Source: Zygophlyctis sp. KS116 (taxonomy: Eukaryota > Fungi > Chytridiomycota). From it: a DNA stretch of 32,000 bases. Of this stretch, positions 15,039-21,105 are shown one piece after another. A model generated the notes under the pieces. That model saw only the letters and a list, made by a program, of their open reading frames with translations. It searched no databases and had not been told where the DNA came from. The stretch is taken from positions 1 through 32,000 of the forward strand of contig BAAFSQ010000001.1 of assembly GCA_054661495.1 (NCBI GenBank). Reading direction: 5' to 3'. A program made the translations under genes and the position numbers. The first letter of the stretch is position 1. Every line of letters starts with the position of its first letter.

Positions 15039-18000
15039 ATGACCAGAAACTGTGGATATTCTTATCATCACAAATGTAAATCTTATGATATGAATGAAAT
15101 GGGAAACATTTTGATCGAGGCAATGAAGGAATCGGATTTGGAAATCGTTTGCGATCGTCTGGTTTTGATCAAGGAATCTTGTCCAAAAGACACAAAACGG
15201 CAGATTCTTTCCGATAAATTAATTCAAGAGCTCAAGAGTTCCGAAGGGAATGCCGTTTTCAAGGAATTATTAATAGAAATCAAAGCTGATGATTTACAGT
15301 ATGTCTGTACTTCTCTGGTATTACTAAAATCAACTTCATCAATGAGAAAACCTATCAAGGATGATCTTTTACTGTTACTAAAGGCTCATATCAATTTTAG
15401 GAATAAATCAGGATCACAAAATGATGCTGAAAAGTATAGAAATTCAAGTCACTTGAAAAATAATAATGGACATAACGGAGATTGGGTGGGGCTAAGATGT
15501 AGATTTGCTTGTGAACCATTCAATATGGATCTTTTGAAAGTAGAGTTTGGGGAGTATGGGGGCATAAATGGAATGTGGATGGATCAAAAGGATTGGATAG
15601 TTTACATAATGGTATCTTCAAATTCTTTTTATAAAGTAGTATATTAATGCAAAAAGCGCATCTTTAGCGTACTCGAGTTTAAATGATTCTAGTTTGAATT
15701 GTGATATTAAGAATCGTTTGAAAATGACTTTAATGACAAAAGATAGTATATTGGATGAAACGGCTGGTTTAGAGTCTATTTGGGCTTCTCCAAACTATCA
15801 AAAGGATTTAAGAATAGCAGTTTCTGTTAAATCCGCATATGTTCAAAAACAGAATTTAAGAACTATAAATGATATACTTTGGAAATATGGCAGTCAAAAA
15901 GGAAATAGCATATTTAGGCCAGAAAATAATGAAGTTATATTCATTTATCATAACTCAGATTCTGCTTTGAAAGCTTATGAATCTATTAATCGTGATGTTC
16001 TTGAATTAAGGGATGCAGCAGTTGATATTTTCACAGAAAATGAAGCTATTGAAAGACAAAATGGTGCGTTGGGAGATAGGTCTACAGTGAGAGAAAATCC
16101 AACAGATCCAAGACTACGTTCTTCTTCTTATGAACGTCCTAATCGAAGAGACTGCTTGTATATACAAGGATTAATTGGATCAGTTAATGAAGAAAAGATT
16201 AGAGACGATCTTTTAGAGGATTTTGGAGATATTTTAGAACTGTGGCTTTCTAGACTAAAAAAACATTGTTTTGTTTATGTAATTATTTTTCTATTAAATC
16301 TAGTTTAAAAGTGAAGAAGACGCCAAAGATGCAGTTTCATATTGTGATGATCTTAAGTGGCCAGAAGATAATGGAAAACGTCTAAAGCCAGAATTATTGC
16401 TCACAAGAGATGCCAAAGCAAAGGAGGAAGCTCTGAGGAAACTAGAAAATGACCTTGGAGGACCAAAAGTTGACTTTCAAAATATAAGCAATTGGGTTGA
16501 GCGAAAACAAAAGCAAAAATATGAATTCAAAATTGAACAAGAGAAAAGAATCAGAGCGGAGCAGAAAGTAAAGGCTGAGCGCGAAGAGGTAGAGAGAGAA
16601 CGAGATTTGAGACTTTCGATTGAAAGGAAAAATAATTTGGAAAAACGGCAGGCTGAAGAGCGAATCAGAGCTCAAAAGGTAAGCTTTTTTACATAAAATG
16701 AAAGGTTATCGAAGAAAGATCACATTTCAGCACTAGGCCGGTTTTAGAGAATTCGGATGGTTCCTTTAGTCATGCTTATGAAAGGGAAACCCCTCCGCAG
16801 AGAAAATCCGAATCTCATAGTTATGATACTACCAGCCACTTCTCCGGCTACAGAAGTTCTTCTAGTAAAAGTACGAGAGAGCAATTCACCTTTGTCACAC
16901 CCAGCGCAAACCTTGATAGTGGCAGTCTCATATCCAACCATTCTACTAGTCCATTTGACAAATCGCTACCAAGTAAATAATTTATTGATATAATAATATT
17001 AGGAAATCCTATCGTAGACTGGTTTCAGGCAGCTGTTTGTGATTTGTCAAAGGAAGGCTTGGAATGCATCGCAAAAAAGCTCATACCTGGCGATCATAGG
17101 CACATTGGTAGGACGGAACTCGTTGCTATGATTGAGGGCTCATTGAATTTGGCTATAATATCATTTAAGGAGCTTCTTAAAACTGAAGGAGGTGACATTA
17201 AACGAAGGCCTGGTGATTTACCGCATTCTGTGGACAGAAAAAGATCATATGATGATCCTGAACTTTCACCAAGTAGTCATTATCCTCCCAAAAAAAGACT
17301 CGGTGCAAACGAAGAGCTTACTAGTATTAAATCTATTGTTCTTATATCAAATTTGGATGAAACTGTTGATGAGAAAACTTGGAAGCTCTTATTTCAAGAA
17401 TACGGTCCAATTGTACGATTTTGGAGACACCCTAATGGTAAAGAATGTCTTGTCAAGGTGATTTGATTATTGTCTAAATTTAGTATACGACTGTTGAAGA
17501 TGCCAAGCGAGTTCATAAAGACTTAAATGAAGAGTATTATAGAGACTATGTTACAAATGAATTAACTCATTATAAGTTTTCTACCAGATTGGTGGATGAA
17601 TCTTACGCTGTGGAATATGTCAATAAACAGCAAAAAGAAGAAGAAGAAGCCAAAAAGTTTCGAAAAGAAGAGGAAGATCGCTTAAGGGAGGAGAATAGAC
17701 GTAAAGAAGAAGAGATGATCCTTGCCGAAGAGAAAAGAAGATTACAAAATGAAAAGATTGAGGCTGAACGATTTTTAAAGGAGAAAGAGGAAATAGAGCG
17801 TAGAAGAGATATTCAGCGCATAAAAGAAGAATCATATATCAGACATGTACAATCACCAGAATATTTTCATCCTAAAATGGAAGAATCACCAAAAAAACTC
17901 ATCTCTCCTCCCTATGGATCTGCAAACTTGTACTTGAACAATCAATCTTTTCAAAATGAAAACACCGTACTTTTACTTTTTTAATTTTCTAGGAAAGCTG

Positions 18001-18654
18001 TCTATTAGTAGGAATTTTTAATCCTCCTTGCAAAAGTTTGAATGATATTTCTCACATGTTTCAAGGAATATGCGTAATTGATCATAAATTTGACAACTCT
18101 CATACAAACTTATTCTTAAAGGTATTTTTTACATTATTTAAAATCAAGTTTCCAAACTCTTCTGATGCCAAGCTAGTTTATCAAAAATTAAATGGATTAG
18201 TCTGGCATTATGAGACACTTCACAAGATCCAAGCGCACTACATAACTGAAGAAACGGGACTTGAAAGAATAAACACTGTTTCTGAACCAACTTTAAAATC
18301 AGATGCCTCAGAATCATGTGGTATATTTAAATTCAAAGTTTAAAATTTAGGATACTGTCATATTTCAGGACTCATTAAACCTATTAGATCTTCCAAATTA
18401 AATTCATTTTTGATCAAGTATGGAGGATTGAATGCATACTCTAATGCATCTAATGATATTATTGCATCTGTAATCCATTGTAAATTTAAAAATAGTTCAA
18501 GGACAATAATGAGCTGTCTAGACTGATTCAAGATTTTTCAGGGAAAAAATTGGAAGGAACCAATGAAAGATCTAAAGCCAATTTTAAAATTATTTCAGAG
18601 CAAGAGTTTGAAGGATCTGTCAAGGATTTTAAAACCATCTTGTTTAAAATTTAA
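15039..18654 (+). CDS. Large RNA-binding protein with ~6 divergent Acinus-type RRMs, SAP/HeH-like helical repeats and E/K/R-rich helices, ~1123 aa, 10 exons
   Basis: Introns at 15612-15639, 16279-16303, 16679-16704, 16973-17002, 17458-17483, 17967-17992, 18122-18148, 18321-18350 and 18470-18495 join six track ORFs plus unlisted exons into one frame. The best RRM is CLYIQGL...FGDILELWLSRLKKHCFVY|FKSEEDAKDAVSYCDDLKWPEDNGKRL. Confidence 0.75.
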
Positions 18655-18743: not shown

Positions 18744-20528
18744 ATGCGAATTAAATTGTCTTTTCCGGATGGGCTTATTGATGACTGCTGGTTTGGATTT
18801 GAGACTGACAGCTTACAAACGGTGAATGATCTTTGTCTGGCGATTCAAGATCGTTTTAAAATTGGAAATTCAAGTCTGAAAATGGATGGTTTTATTTTAT
18901 TAGGAGACGATCGGGTCTCTAATTTACTGAGAGATGATGATTTGATTCTTGTCAAGAGTTTGAAAGAATTGAATTCTCCAGTTAAAATACCGCAGGATCG
19001 GTCATTGCAAGTTCATATCCATGATAGATTTTCTGATTCGTCGCATGATACACTTTCAAATAATGATAATTATAATCATAGTACACATATGATAGACTCG
19101 ACAGTTGTTGACTCAAAAAGTTTAGATTCTCAAAAATATGAAATTGCAGATGATTTAGTAGATGATGATGAAGTAGATAAAGTAGAAATGGAAGATGTCA
19201 AGGCTGACAGATTAGAAAAATGCGCTGATATAGATTTAAAAGAAAATGGACAAGAAGATTTAAGTGAATCAGTAGAAAAAGGCAAGGTAGAGGATGCATC
19301 TCCTGTAGAAACTCGACTTGAAATTTCTAGAGATTTAGAAGATGGACAGGTTTTAACTACTGATGAAGTAGTTGATGAGGATAAGCAATTGTTTGTTCCA
19401 ATTCCAGAGTTTTCAGAAGACGAATTGGATGATAGTTTTACTACATCAAATAATAATATGACGGTAATAGTAGTAGAAATAAATCTAGACATTTTCTTAT
19501 TCAAAAGAATCAAAGTATAGAGTAGATGGATTACGTGAAAAAGGAACAATTATTCATTTTGAACAAGTTCAAAGAAAGGGAGGATGGATGGATTATGGTG
19601 GAAATACTATGGAATGGACTCCACCTGAATCTAATAAAGGATGGAATATTTCACCTGCAAAACACAAAATTCCAAATGATGATGTAGATCATTGGAATAC
19701 TCAAATTAAAGATTTTGACTCAAAACCTCTTAAAAAGAAGTCTAGATATGATAATGAAACATTTAATCGTGGTAATTCATATAGAAATAATTCTTCTTGT
19801 ACATGTTTTATTTGGAATTTAGGAGAAAATGTTTCAAAAGTTGAATTAAAACAATTATTTTCTGATTGTGGAAAAATCATTGATATTAAACTTGTTCAAG
19901 ACAAAAATCATGATCAAACTGGATATATTCAATTCTCAAATTCTTTTGGAGCAAATCGTGCTTTTGGATTAGATCAAAAACTTTATTTAAATGGATCTAA
20001 AATCCGTATCAAACTATCTGAATCAAATTTATCTAGCAAATTTATCCAAGAATCATCTCTTAAAACTCTAAATAATTCTCAAGAATCACCTGTTTCAAAA
20101 AATCCTATAATAGACCAAACCACAAATCCAATATTAAAAATCAGCAATCCAAAAACTCAAAGTATTAACAAGCCAGAACCAAAATCCCCAGAGATTTTAA
20201 CACCGTGTAAGAATTTTAATTTTTAAACCTAGGTTACTGTGTAGCTTCTGGTCTTTGTAAGCCAATCAAAATCTCAATTTTCACATCATTTTTATTAAAG
20301 TCTGGTGCAATCACTTGTTTCTCAAATGAACAAGACTCTGTAATTTTGAGTGTATTTTATTTTTTTTAACAAAAGTTTAATTCTATTGTCAAGATGAATG
20401 CATTGATTCATGATTTTTCTGGAAAGAGTCTGATTGGATCTAATCCAAAGACTATTTGCACTTTTAAAGTGTTGGAGGTTGAGGACTTTGAAGGGTTCAA
20501 GCCCTACTATACAAAAAAGTTTTTTTAG
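18744..20528 (+). CDS. Coilin-N-like domain + acidic linker + RRM + degenerate C-terminal RRM, ~569 aa, 4 exons
   Basis: N-terminus MRIKLSF...CWFGFETDSLQTVNDLCLAIQDRF...LKMDGFILL...LLRDDDLILVK follows the coilin N-terminal domain pattern. RRM CFIWNLGENVSKVELKQLFSDCGKI...TGYIQF. Basic patch PLKKKSR. Introns at 19464-19488, 20207-20232 and 20352-20375. Confidence 0.72.
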
Positions 20529-20586: not shown

Positions 20587-20734
20587 AAGGGTTGAAAATT
20601 CTTCTTGTAAAAAAAGTTGGTCATTCAGGGTTACCAAGGGTTGAAATTCTTCTTGTAAAAAAAGTTGGTCATTAAGGGTTACAGACGTGTTGTGTTCATC
20701 AAGGGTTGAAATTCTTCTTGTAAAAAAAGTTGGT
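20587..20734 (+). repeat. Three ~34-nt direct repeats upstream of eIF1
   Basis: AAGGGTTGAAATTCTTCTTGTAAAAAAAGTTGGT at 20587-20621 (one extra A), 20636-20669 and 20701-20734. Copies 1 and 2 extend with CATT(C/A)AGGGTTAC. Confidence 0.95.
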
Positions 20735-20745
20735 GCGGCCATTGC

Positions 20746-21105
20746 ATGACTGACAATATCCAAAATCTTGCTGCCTATGACCCTTTTGCTGATACCGGAG
20801 AATCTGATGACTTAAAAGTTGAAGGATATATTCGTAAGATTTCTTTCTAACTCTTAGATATTCGAATTCAACAGAGAAATGGAAGAAAAACACTCACAAC
20901 TGTCCAAGGGCTTCCGTCCGATTTAGATCCTAAAAAGATTCTTAAAGCCTTTAAAAAGGATTTTGCTTGTAATGGTAGTATTGTGAATGATGAAGAAATG
21001 GGAAATGTAATTCAATTGCAGGGAGATCAAAGAGCAAAAGTTGCTGGATTTCTAGCAGAAGCAGGAATAGTTGCCAAAAATAAGATCAAAATTCATGGAT
21101 TTTAA
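20746..21105 (+). CDS. SUI1: Translation initiation factor eIF1 (SUI1), 111 aa
   Basis: Missed by the ORF track. The 24-nt intron 20834-20857 (gtaagatttctttCTAACtcttag) gives MTDNIQNLAAYDPFADTGESDDLKVEGYIHIRIQQRNGRKTLTTVQGL...KKDFACNG...VIQLQGDQR...IKIHGF*. Confidence 0.97.

Follow-up and report, generated by a model that had tools for sequence, protein, structure and literature searches.

An array of five or six RRM-like units, apparently grown by duplication of a two-exon cassette, in a gene conserved in a small clade of uncultured, chytrid-like freshwater organisms

The analysed window (a stretch of 32,000 nucleotides, positions 1 to 32,000 of contig BAAFSQ010000001.1 from Zygophlyctis sp. 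KS116) carries at 15039-18654, on the + strand, a single gene of 10 exons with one open frame of 1123 aa. When joined, the ten exons measure 3372 nt, which equals 1123 codons and one terminal stop, and the nine introns between them are all of the GT-AG type and only 25-30 nt long. One spliced frame of about this length had been proposed in the initial annotation, and it was confirmed both by the frame check and by two full syntenic orthologues (L013 and L033), which come from other metagenome assemblies and have an identical exon structure. Our results indicated that this uncultured, chytrid-like freshwater organism has a real gene here, and that the gene is conserved. The features of the gene and of its neighbour are as follows.

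15039-15611, 15640-16278, 16304-16678, 16705-16972 and 17003-17457, + strand: exons 1-5
17484-17966, 17993-18121, 18149-18320, 18351-18469 and 18496-18654, + strand: exons 6-10
15090..15380, + strand: N-terminal helical domain (aa ~18-114) of two helix-helix-loop-helix repeats, SAP-like by structure (AF2, VIA-align)
15477..15732, + strand: RRM-like unit 1 (aa 147-222), degenerate RNP motifs, split by the intron 15612-15639
15802..16056, + strand: RRM unit 2 (aa 246-330), non-aromatic RNP1, intron-less here
16141..16411, + strand: RRM unit 3 (aa 359-440), split by the intron 16279-16303
16412..16678, + strand: E/K/R-rich helical stretch 1 (aa ~441-530), after unit 3, by composition
16705..16972, + strand: Ser/Thr-rich linker exon (aa 530-618; 34% S+T), poorly conserved
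17003..17187, + strand: conserved small domain (aa ~619-680), highly conserved in L013 and L033
17320..17618, + strand: RRM unit 4 (aa 725-815), split by the intron 17458-17483
17619..17831, + strand: E/K/R-rich helical stretch 2 (aa 816-886), after unit 4, by composition
17961..18262, + strand: RRM-like unit 5 (aa 930-1012), split by the 27-nt intron 18122-18148
18351..18612, + strand: probable degenerate RRM-like unit 6 (aa ~1033-1110), RNP2-like C-H-I-S-G-L, split by the intron 18470-18495
20235..20525, + strand: C-terminal module of the neighbouring Coilin_N gene, a copy of unit 6 in two exons with the intron position of unit 6

A frame of this length could be an artefact in which several adjacent genes, or a decaying pseudogene, have been joined by wishful splicing. 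The very short introns would fit such a reading, as would the RNA on the gene, which consists of one 184-nt metatranscriptome contig that lies wholly in exon 1, spans no intron and may represent DNA carry-over. However, the ten-exon frame is open in three species at ~62% identity, even through the linker exon (32% identity to L013), and both the start and the stop are conserved. Differences between strains point in the same direction. Indels of 1 nt (at 16297, and at 18130 and 18133), like all those that are not multiples of three, are confined to predicted introns, the sole exonic indel (at 17219) is of 3 nt, and the listed substitutions show a synonymous excess (20 synonymous, 13 non-synonymous and 7 intronic). 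A strain variant with 2 nt deleted inside the 27-nt segment of unit 5 indicates that this segment is an intron and not coding. Given the frames kept in the syntenic orthologues, the placement of the strain indels and the pattern of substitutions, the gene model stands beyond chance, and we regard an artefact as highly improbable.

The orthologue in L013 has 1137 aa, nine introns at matching places and 62% identity overall. Relatives are otherwise few: an exhaustive phmmer search with exon 2 recovered only 6 ORF fragments, a word search with exon 5 recovered 3, and the JGI metagenome contigs searched for relatives of the locus yielded none. This narrow distribution agrees with the lineage-specific character that had been suggested for the gene, which so far has come to light in just one small clade of uncultured, chytrid-like freshwater organisms. 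Unit 1 is missing in L033, P0002 and P0006, so that arrays of five or six units occur among the relatives.

The strength with which the units could be assigned as RRMs differed. Unit 2 is confidently predicted as an RRM, as its AF2 model follows the order beta1-alpha1-beta2-beta3-alpha2-beta4 with a C-terminal helix (pLDDT 83-91) and was matched by Foldseek, with a probability of 1.00, to the RRMs of U1A, Nup35 and Nab3. The evidence supports an RRM-like character for units 1, 3, 4 and 5. For unit 1, the leave-one-out HMM gave 23.9 bits (a score reached by 0 of 1000 decoys) and hhalign aligned it with unit 3 at P 1.6e-4; its AF2 model has an alpha-beta-beta-alpha-beta order with low pLDDT, and a weak match to the NELF-E RRM was detected. 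Unit 3, with 77% identity to L013, combines a near-canonical RNP2 (L-Y-I-Q-G-L), an Acinus-like RNP1 (K-K-H-C-F-V-Y-F) and a K-W-P loop, and gave a Pfam RRM_1 half-hit at E 9e-4 (E 8e-3 for its L013 counterpart). Unit 4 (73% identity to L013) gave a similar half-hit at E 6e-3 and was aligned with unit 3 by hhalign at 93% probability and E 3.5e-7. The half-hits of units 3 and 4, obtained in two species, stay just below the gathering score, since each domain is interrupted by an intron. None of 1000 decoys reached the leave-one-out score of unit 5, whose intron-less copy in L033 matched a Prp24 RRM at E 0.055 and had only RRMs as its nearest ESM Atlas clusters. Unit 6 is marginal by its statistics (leave-one-out p ~0.002-0.04; hhalign P 0.01, in register), and its intron has the position and phase seen in the other units.

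When a profile of the units (A8) was compared with the PDB, 187 chains were matched with E-values down to 1.7e-7, and the best 60 of these 187 all belonged to RRM proteins. Exon-wise phmmer searches of the PDB (exons 2 and 3, the halves of unit 3, the read-through of unit 5 and the orthologue unit 1) returned only chance or very weak RRM matches. The six RRM-like units of the initial annotation can thus be upheld for units 1-5, with the reservations that unit 6 is marginal and that unit 1 is absent from some relatives; each of the motifs quoted there was found at its named unit.

Phase-0 exon ends at codons 191, 404, 770, 974 and 1071 fall into one alignment column, which is anchored by the intron-less copies. 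Across the orthologues, this beta3 intron was found at the same spot in every unit in at least one species, and unit 2, which lacks it here, carries it in relatives. Since the same phase-0 intron recurs in strand beta3, we read the gene structure as demonstrating that a two-exon RRM cassette was duplicated repeatedly to build the array, whose unit number (five or six) is still variable. An amplification by internal duplication had been anticipated, and the common intron bears it out.

Outside the RRM-like units, the N-terminus is predicted to form a SAP-like helical domain, which was recognised by structure though not by Pfam, as the Pfam SAP model had no match in the window, this domain included. 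The AF2 model (made for the orthologue fragment P0003) reached pLDDT 85-92, and its best VIA-align matches were SAP domains at Z 6-8, including FAN1 (Z 8.1), PIAS1 (Z 8.1, rmsd 2.3 over 65 residues), SIZ1, SF3B2 and E1B-AP5; a Z of ~8 lies in the range where helical bundles may match by chance. This domain was overlooked in the initial annotation, and it fits an Acinus/SAFB-type layout. A third SAP-like motif was suspected in exon 5 and was dropped, as BLASTP did not relate it to the N-terminal domain. The long E/K/R-rich helices described after two of the units were recovered as composition behind units 3 and 4, with 57% E/K/R across aa 470-530 (exon 3 as a whole has 74% identity to L013) and 65% across aa 816-886, where neither P nor G occurs. 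The small domain at aa ~619-680 had no match in Pfam or the ESM Atlas. NLS-like basic clusters are present in the protein and point to a possible nuclear localisation.

The last unit is also found outside the array gene. The adjacent Coilin_N gene ends in a copy of it, with BLASTP identities between unit 6 and this C-terminal module of 46% (E 2e-12) and 43% (E 3e-11). A unit 6 copy closes the Coilin_N gene of L013 too, and the two genes adjoin each other in three assemblies.

Acinus was the family to which the array had been assigned. In Acinus, the subunit of the ASAP complex that bears an RRM, RNP1 reads KSHCFVTY and RNP2 reads VHISNL, and the Acinus-type RRM has a short loop 3 and a C-terminal helix (PMC6057467). 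The RNP1 of unit 3 is identical to that of Acinus at 5 of 8 positions, among them H3 and C4, both deviations that mark Acinus, and, without any gap, its K-W-P is as far from RNP1 as that of the human Acinus RRM (6G6S); the two also have in common a short beta2-beta3 loop and their overall ungapped length. Profile A8 aligned with 6G6S from end to end (2-78), with a single 2-residue indel and 27.5 bits. Further likenesses are the H-I-S-x-L of RNP2 in unit 6, the extra helix that follows the RRM, as in unit 2, and the layout, in which a SAP-like domain precedes and an E/K/R-rich stretch follows. The Acinus pattern of unit 3 therefore stands as regards the RNP1 deviations, K-W-P and loop lengths. 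It is weakened by the rank of 6G6S, which came fourth when the unit profile was compared with the PDB, at a score no more than 2 bits from those of RBMY and RBMX, and by searches with the single halves of unit 3, which did not find Acinus. A profile of the second halves of units 3 and 5 likewise gave only chance matches in the PDB, with neither Acinus nor any RRM, and 6G6S was absent from the top 50 structural matches of the unit 2 model, which were generic RRMs. The label 'Acinus-type' for the whole array did not hold, as the signature is confined to unit 3 and the RNP motifs of units 1, 2, 5 and 6 are degenerate, with the aromatic residues lost in most units.

Acinus has one RRM as opposed to five or six RRM-like units here, and a SAP domain in its long isoform, whereas in the array protein SAP is recognisable only by predicted structure. 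The RSB motif (Pfam PF16294), through which RNPS1 and SAP18 are bound, is a basic K-T-K/R hairpin (PMC5441173). As noted earlier, it is absent here: in three orthologues, PF16294 matched none of the exons at E<=10, K-T-K/R does not occur in the protein, and a genome-wide search with the same model, which found zero matches anywhere, is hence insensitive. An RS/RD/RE tail is also lacking, as the 1123 aa contain only 9 RS/SR dipeptides and the C-terminus is the RRM-like unit 6. Looking in the genome for SAP18 and a separate canonical Acinus, we recovered SAP18 (contig 9; 39.4 bits, over the cut-off), as well as Pinin (75 bits), but no canonical Acinus and no other SAP+RRM gene. The nine Pfam SAP loci inspected encode PIAS-type ligases, a Cce1-like resolvase, Tho1/SARNP-like, RFC1-like and PYM-like proteins, and RING proteins. 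DNA patterns for K-x-H-C-F-V occurred elsewhere in the genome only in a copia-like element and in non-RRM contexts, and matches to half-unit profiles were limited to the array gene and its neighbour.

On these sequence comparisons, descent from Acinus is a plausible lead. In its strongest form, the gene would be the true Acinus orthologue of the lineage, in which a SAP-RRM-charged ancestor had its RRM cassette amplified and still acts with RNPS1 and SAP18 on the exon-junction complex, by way of an RSB-like segment that has diverged beyond recognition. The residues and spacing of unit 3, the SAP-like N-terminus and the charged stretch favour this, as does a genome with SAP18 and Pinin in which no other SAP+RRM gene and no second K-x-H-C-F-V RRM turned up; 6G6S is, moreover, the second-best single-domain match and the sole end-to-end alignment of high rank. 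Yet the missing RSB motif and tail, the failure to separate 6G6S from RBMY and RBMX and the half-unit searches all speak against it, and in an assembly of 1175 contigs a canonical Acinus may merely be unassembled. We consider it somewhat unlikely. In another version, an Acinus orthologue was amplified to five or six cassettes, its RSB link to SAP18/RNPS1 was either lost or rebuilt, and one copy was donated to the coilin-like neighbour, so that both nuclear-body-type proteins would have a common docking module; this is in our estimation unlikely.

It is also conceivable that the array has no particular relation to Acinus and that the shared residues are convergent. The protein would then be a generic, fast-evolving multi-RRM protein comparable to arrays of the SPEN or Prp24 type, tied through the common C-terminal module to the coilin-like neighbour and to snRNP or Cajal-body-type assemblies. 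SPEN/SHARP and Prp24 likewise have several consecutive RRMs, some of them non-canonical, and the top PDB matches of the unit profile were SHARP/SPEN, PABP and RBMY, with PRP24 also appearing and the SHARP RRM region as the top summed match. The whole copy of unit 5 is closest to Prp24 RRMs, unit 2 resembles generic RRMs, and the Coilin_N gene with its terminal module keeps its place beside the array. In contrast, the array protein has no HAT repeats, Lsm-binding tail or other family marker (Pfam scans of any exon gave no SPOC match), and per-domain scores are below those of Acinus or RBMY. The RNP1 H-C pair together with K-W-P at equal spacing would be an unusual double coincidence, and in so compact a genome, the fact that two genes are neighbours says little about function. 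We give a generic origin of this kind a slim chance of being right.

Proteins of the SAFB / SLTM family have a SAP domain, an RRM and a Glu/Arg-rich coiled coil, and are of the nuclear-scaffold type. The array protein shares with them the order of SAP-like domain, RRM and long charged helix. It differs in that SAFB has a single RRM with a different RNP1, whereas the array protein has no Gly-rich tail, and no SAFB chain was found among the best 60 of 187 PDB matches of the unit profile.

Apart from the question of ancestry, we think it probable that the locus is an expressed-type gene for a nuclear-type RNA-binding scaffold with a cassette-built RRM array, restricted to a small clade; its functional roles are read from residues and architecture. 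The protein would run from a tandem SAP-like helical domain through RRM units 1-3, an E/K/R-rich helix and the Ser-rich linker to the small conserved domain, RRM unit 4, a second E/K/R-rich helix and RRM-like units 5 and 6. Unit 3 may be the main RNA-binding module, as it is the only unit in which RNP2 and RNP1 are both near-canonical, and it would then bind with the face of its beta-sheet, the mode proposed for Acinus. Units 1, 2, 4 and 6, with non-aromatic RNP positions, could be protein-binding pseudo-RRMs, the charged helices may serve as spacing or oligomerising modules, and the SAP-like domain might add a contact to nucleic acid or chromatin. Although the ancestral cassette possibly came from an Acinus-like RRM, the array protein would not be a canonical ASAP subunit, because it lacks the RSB motif.

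The gene documents a case of domain-array growth by exon-cassette duplication in which the common intron is a built-in marker, and in which unit number varies between close relatives of a fungal-like lineage that is little known and has extremely short introns. Should the Acinus link be true, an accessory factor of the exon-junction complex was rebuilt into a multivalent scaffold. A true orthologue would be an Acinus with several RRMs, the first of its kind, and nature's own experiment on the rewiring of an EJC-peripheral factor where introns are ~25 nt. If the link is false, this is one more lineage-specific multi-RRM protein. The finding has no bearing on any long-standing question in the field. 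As to the C-terminal unit, its presence in the coilin-like neighbour as well would be consistent with a common partner-binding or dimerisation module.

The contig around the gene is eukaryotic, gene-dense and AT-rich (about 33% GC), and the features discussed here are:
15039-18654, forward strand: gene under study, ten exons
17003-17187, forward strand: strongly conserved ~60-residue domain at the start of exon 5
18744-20528: Coilin_N gene, with matches to Coilin_N (E 4e-9) and to a canonical RRM_1 (E 4.8e-11; ORF 19588-20226), and with a copy of unit 6 at its C-terminus

Joining ten stop-free plus-strand segments gives a 3372-nt reading frame (1123 codons and one stop), exactly the length (~1123 aa) proposed in the initial annotation, and all of the motifs quoted there were found in it. 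The nine introns are all GT-AG and 25-30 nt long. The start codon (15039) is 93 nt downstream of an amino-acid-transporter gene, and 89 nt separate the stop (18654) from the Coilin_N gene that follows.

An exhaustive phmmer search of 1.84 billion representatives with exon 2 returned only six relatives, all exon-sized metagenome ORF fragments, which bears out the earlier proposal of a lineage-specific architecture. Two of these led to full syntenic loci. One, L013 (a 6.5-kb Logan contig), has the same order of transporter, orthologue, Coilin_N gene and SUI1 as our contig; its orthologue has ten exons (1137 aa) with matching intron sites and is 62% identical overall (51-77% per unit, but only 32% in the Ser-rich linker). 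A third orthologue is L033. When freshwater metagenome contigs were compared with our sequence, 1-nt strain indels were confined to predicted introns (16297; 18130 and 18133), and the exon 5 indel was a 3-nt insertion. The in-frame 27-nt segment at 18122-18148 carries both 1-nt deletions (18130, 18133) and is therefore a non-coding intron. The 40 strain substitutions listed comprised 20 synonymous, 13 non-synonymous and 7 intronic changes. The shared exon layout and the intron-only 1-nt indels confirm that this is a single gene, as first reported. RNA support is minimal, consisting of one 184-nt metatranscriptome contig within exon 1, and metatranscriptome contigs covered none of the exon junctions. 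Across the three orthologues, 27 of 27 modelled introns were GT-AG (22-30 nt); given these short introns and the ~90-nt spacers between genes, the genome is extremely compact.

Five units of the protein are RRM-like, and for one the predicted fold is confident. Unit 2 lies whole within one exon, and its predicted fold (beta1-alpha1-beta2-beta3-alpha2-beta4 plus a C-terminal helix; pLDDT 83-91) matched solved RRMs with a Foldseek probability of 1.00. In exon-wise Pfam scans, units 3 and 4 each matched RRM_1 over their first half, as far as the intron; the unit 3 half-match was seen in two species and that of unit 4 in three. Our register-checked profile of the units (whole where intron-free, otherwise halves) matched 187 PDB chains, with all 60 matches listed being RRM proteins. 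In a leave-one-unit-out HMM test, units 1-5 each scored above all 1000 shuffled decoys, and hhalign paired unit 3 with unit 4 (probability 93%). In L033 the copy of unit 5 has no intron; it weakly matched Prp24 RRMs (E 0.055), and the ESM Atlas clusters nearest to it were without exception RRM clusters. The unit 1 model, from an intron-less orthologue fragment (P0003), was of low confidence (order alpha-beta-beta-alpha-beta). Of the six RRM-like units initially described, five are thus upheld by the decoy tests and the unit 2 fold, whereas unit 6, marginal in the HMM test, is only a probable member.

With regard to the origin of the array, five of the six units have a first exon ending in phase 0 (after codons 191, 404, 770, 974 and 1071), at one shared alignment column in strand beta3 directly past the RNP1 core. 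The corresponding unit 2 intron is absent here and present in L013 and three orthologue fragments (P0003, P0005, P0006); the beta3 intron is missing from unit 1 in L013 and from unit 5 in L033. Since the introns share phase and column, the array is most simply explained by a two-exon RRM cassette that was repeatedly duplicated, with the intron occasionally lost afterwards. The two long E/K/R-rich helices noted earlier directly follow units 3 and 4 (57% and 65% E/K/R), and each of these units with its trailing helix appears to be a copy of one RRM-plus-helix module. L033, P0002 and P0006 lack unit 1 together with its linker, so that arrays of five or six units occur.

The initial annotation interpreted the array as an amplified Acinus derivative, and our results support this in part. 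In the solved human Acinus RRM (6G6S), RNP1 reads KSHCFVTY and RNP2 reads VHISNL, loop 3 is short, and a further helix is present at the C-terminus (PMC6057467). Unit 3 (RNP1 K-K-H-C-F-V-Y-F) has the unusual H3 and C4 in common with Acinus, K-W-P lies at an equal ungapped distance in the unit profile and 6G6S, loop 3 has no insertion in the tool alignment, and unit 6 reads C-H-I-S-G-L in its RNP2 region. The profile also spans 6G6S end to end (27.5 bits, E 2.2e-5). However, 6G6S ranked only fourth in the PDB search: SHARP and PABP, each with a score summed across several RRMs, and RBMY (28.9 bits) came before it, and RBMX was on a par with it. It was not found by either half of unit 3 alone or by the second-half profile of units 3 and 5, and it was absent from the top 50 structural matches of the unit 2 model. 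In contrast to Acinus, the 1123-aa protein has no RS tail and no K-T-K/R hairpin, the signature of the RSB motif (PMC5441173); Pfam exon scans found no RSB motif in any orthologue, in line with its reported absence.

A genome-wide search for canonical Acinus and SAP18, proposed earlier as a check, recovered SAP18 and also Pinin in the source assembly (12.7 Mb, 1175 contigs), but neither a canonical Acinus nor any SAP+RRM gene, nor a further K-x-H-C-F-V RRM. The gene under study could represent a heavily altered Acinus; alternatively, Acinus could be absent or unassembled here. PYM is a partner of Y14-Mago, and one ORF on contig 29 (L007) has a PYM-like N-terminus, recognised by eye, followed by a weak SAP-like match; exon-junction-complex accessory genes thus seem to be present. 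The H-C-F-V pattern search also met a copia-type retrotransposon on contig 654 (L030), whose integrase and reverse-transcriptase ORFs were identified by eye in the translations.

The N-terminal ~100 residues are confidently helical in the predicted structure, with SAP domains as best structural matches (FAN1 and PIAS1, Z 8.1, then SIZ1, SF3B2 and E1B-AP5). We term this predicted domain only SAP-like because Z ~8 is borderline for helical bundles and the Pfam SAP model gave no match. At the extreme N-terminus (aa 5-13; 15051-15080), a Cys/His pattern (C5, H10, H11, C13) may form a small metal-binding knuckle, where AF2 confidence is low; C5 and C13 are kept in 3/3 orthologues and H10 is Arg in L013. 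The exon 5 domain had no match in Pfam, PDB sequences or the Atlas. Linkers hold basic clusters (e.g., K-K-R, R-K-R).

The architecture is new and lineage-restricted, assembled from ordinary parts. A near-canonical RNP2 (L-Y-I-Q-G-L) together with the aromatic residue at RNP1 position 5 is retained in unit 3 alone, with non-aromatic residues at that position in units 1, 2, 4 and 6; unit 3 is therefore expected to be the one principal RNA-binding RRM, perhaps aided by unit 5. The surrounding putative pseudo-RRMs, spaced by the charged helices, would bind proteins, the SAP-like domain at the front could make nucleic-acid contact, and the whole may act as a multivalent nuclear scaffold. The unit 6 copy ending the Coilin_N gene (46% and 43% identity) has a matching intron, and the occurrence of this module in both proteins suggests a common partner. 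The Coilin_N part and C-terminal module both occur in the L013 and L033 neighbour genes, whose middle ORFs gave no RRM_1 match. Between the coilin-like and SUI1 genes (20596-20747), a 39-nt unit occurs in three direct copies spaced 48 and 65 nt apart, with the later two matching the first at 97% and 72% identity.
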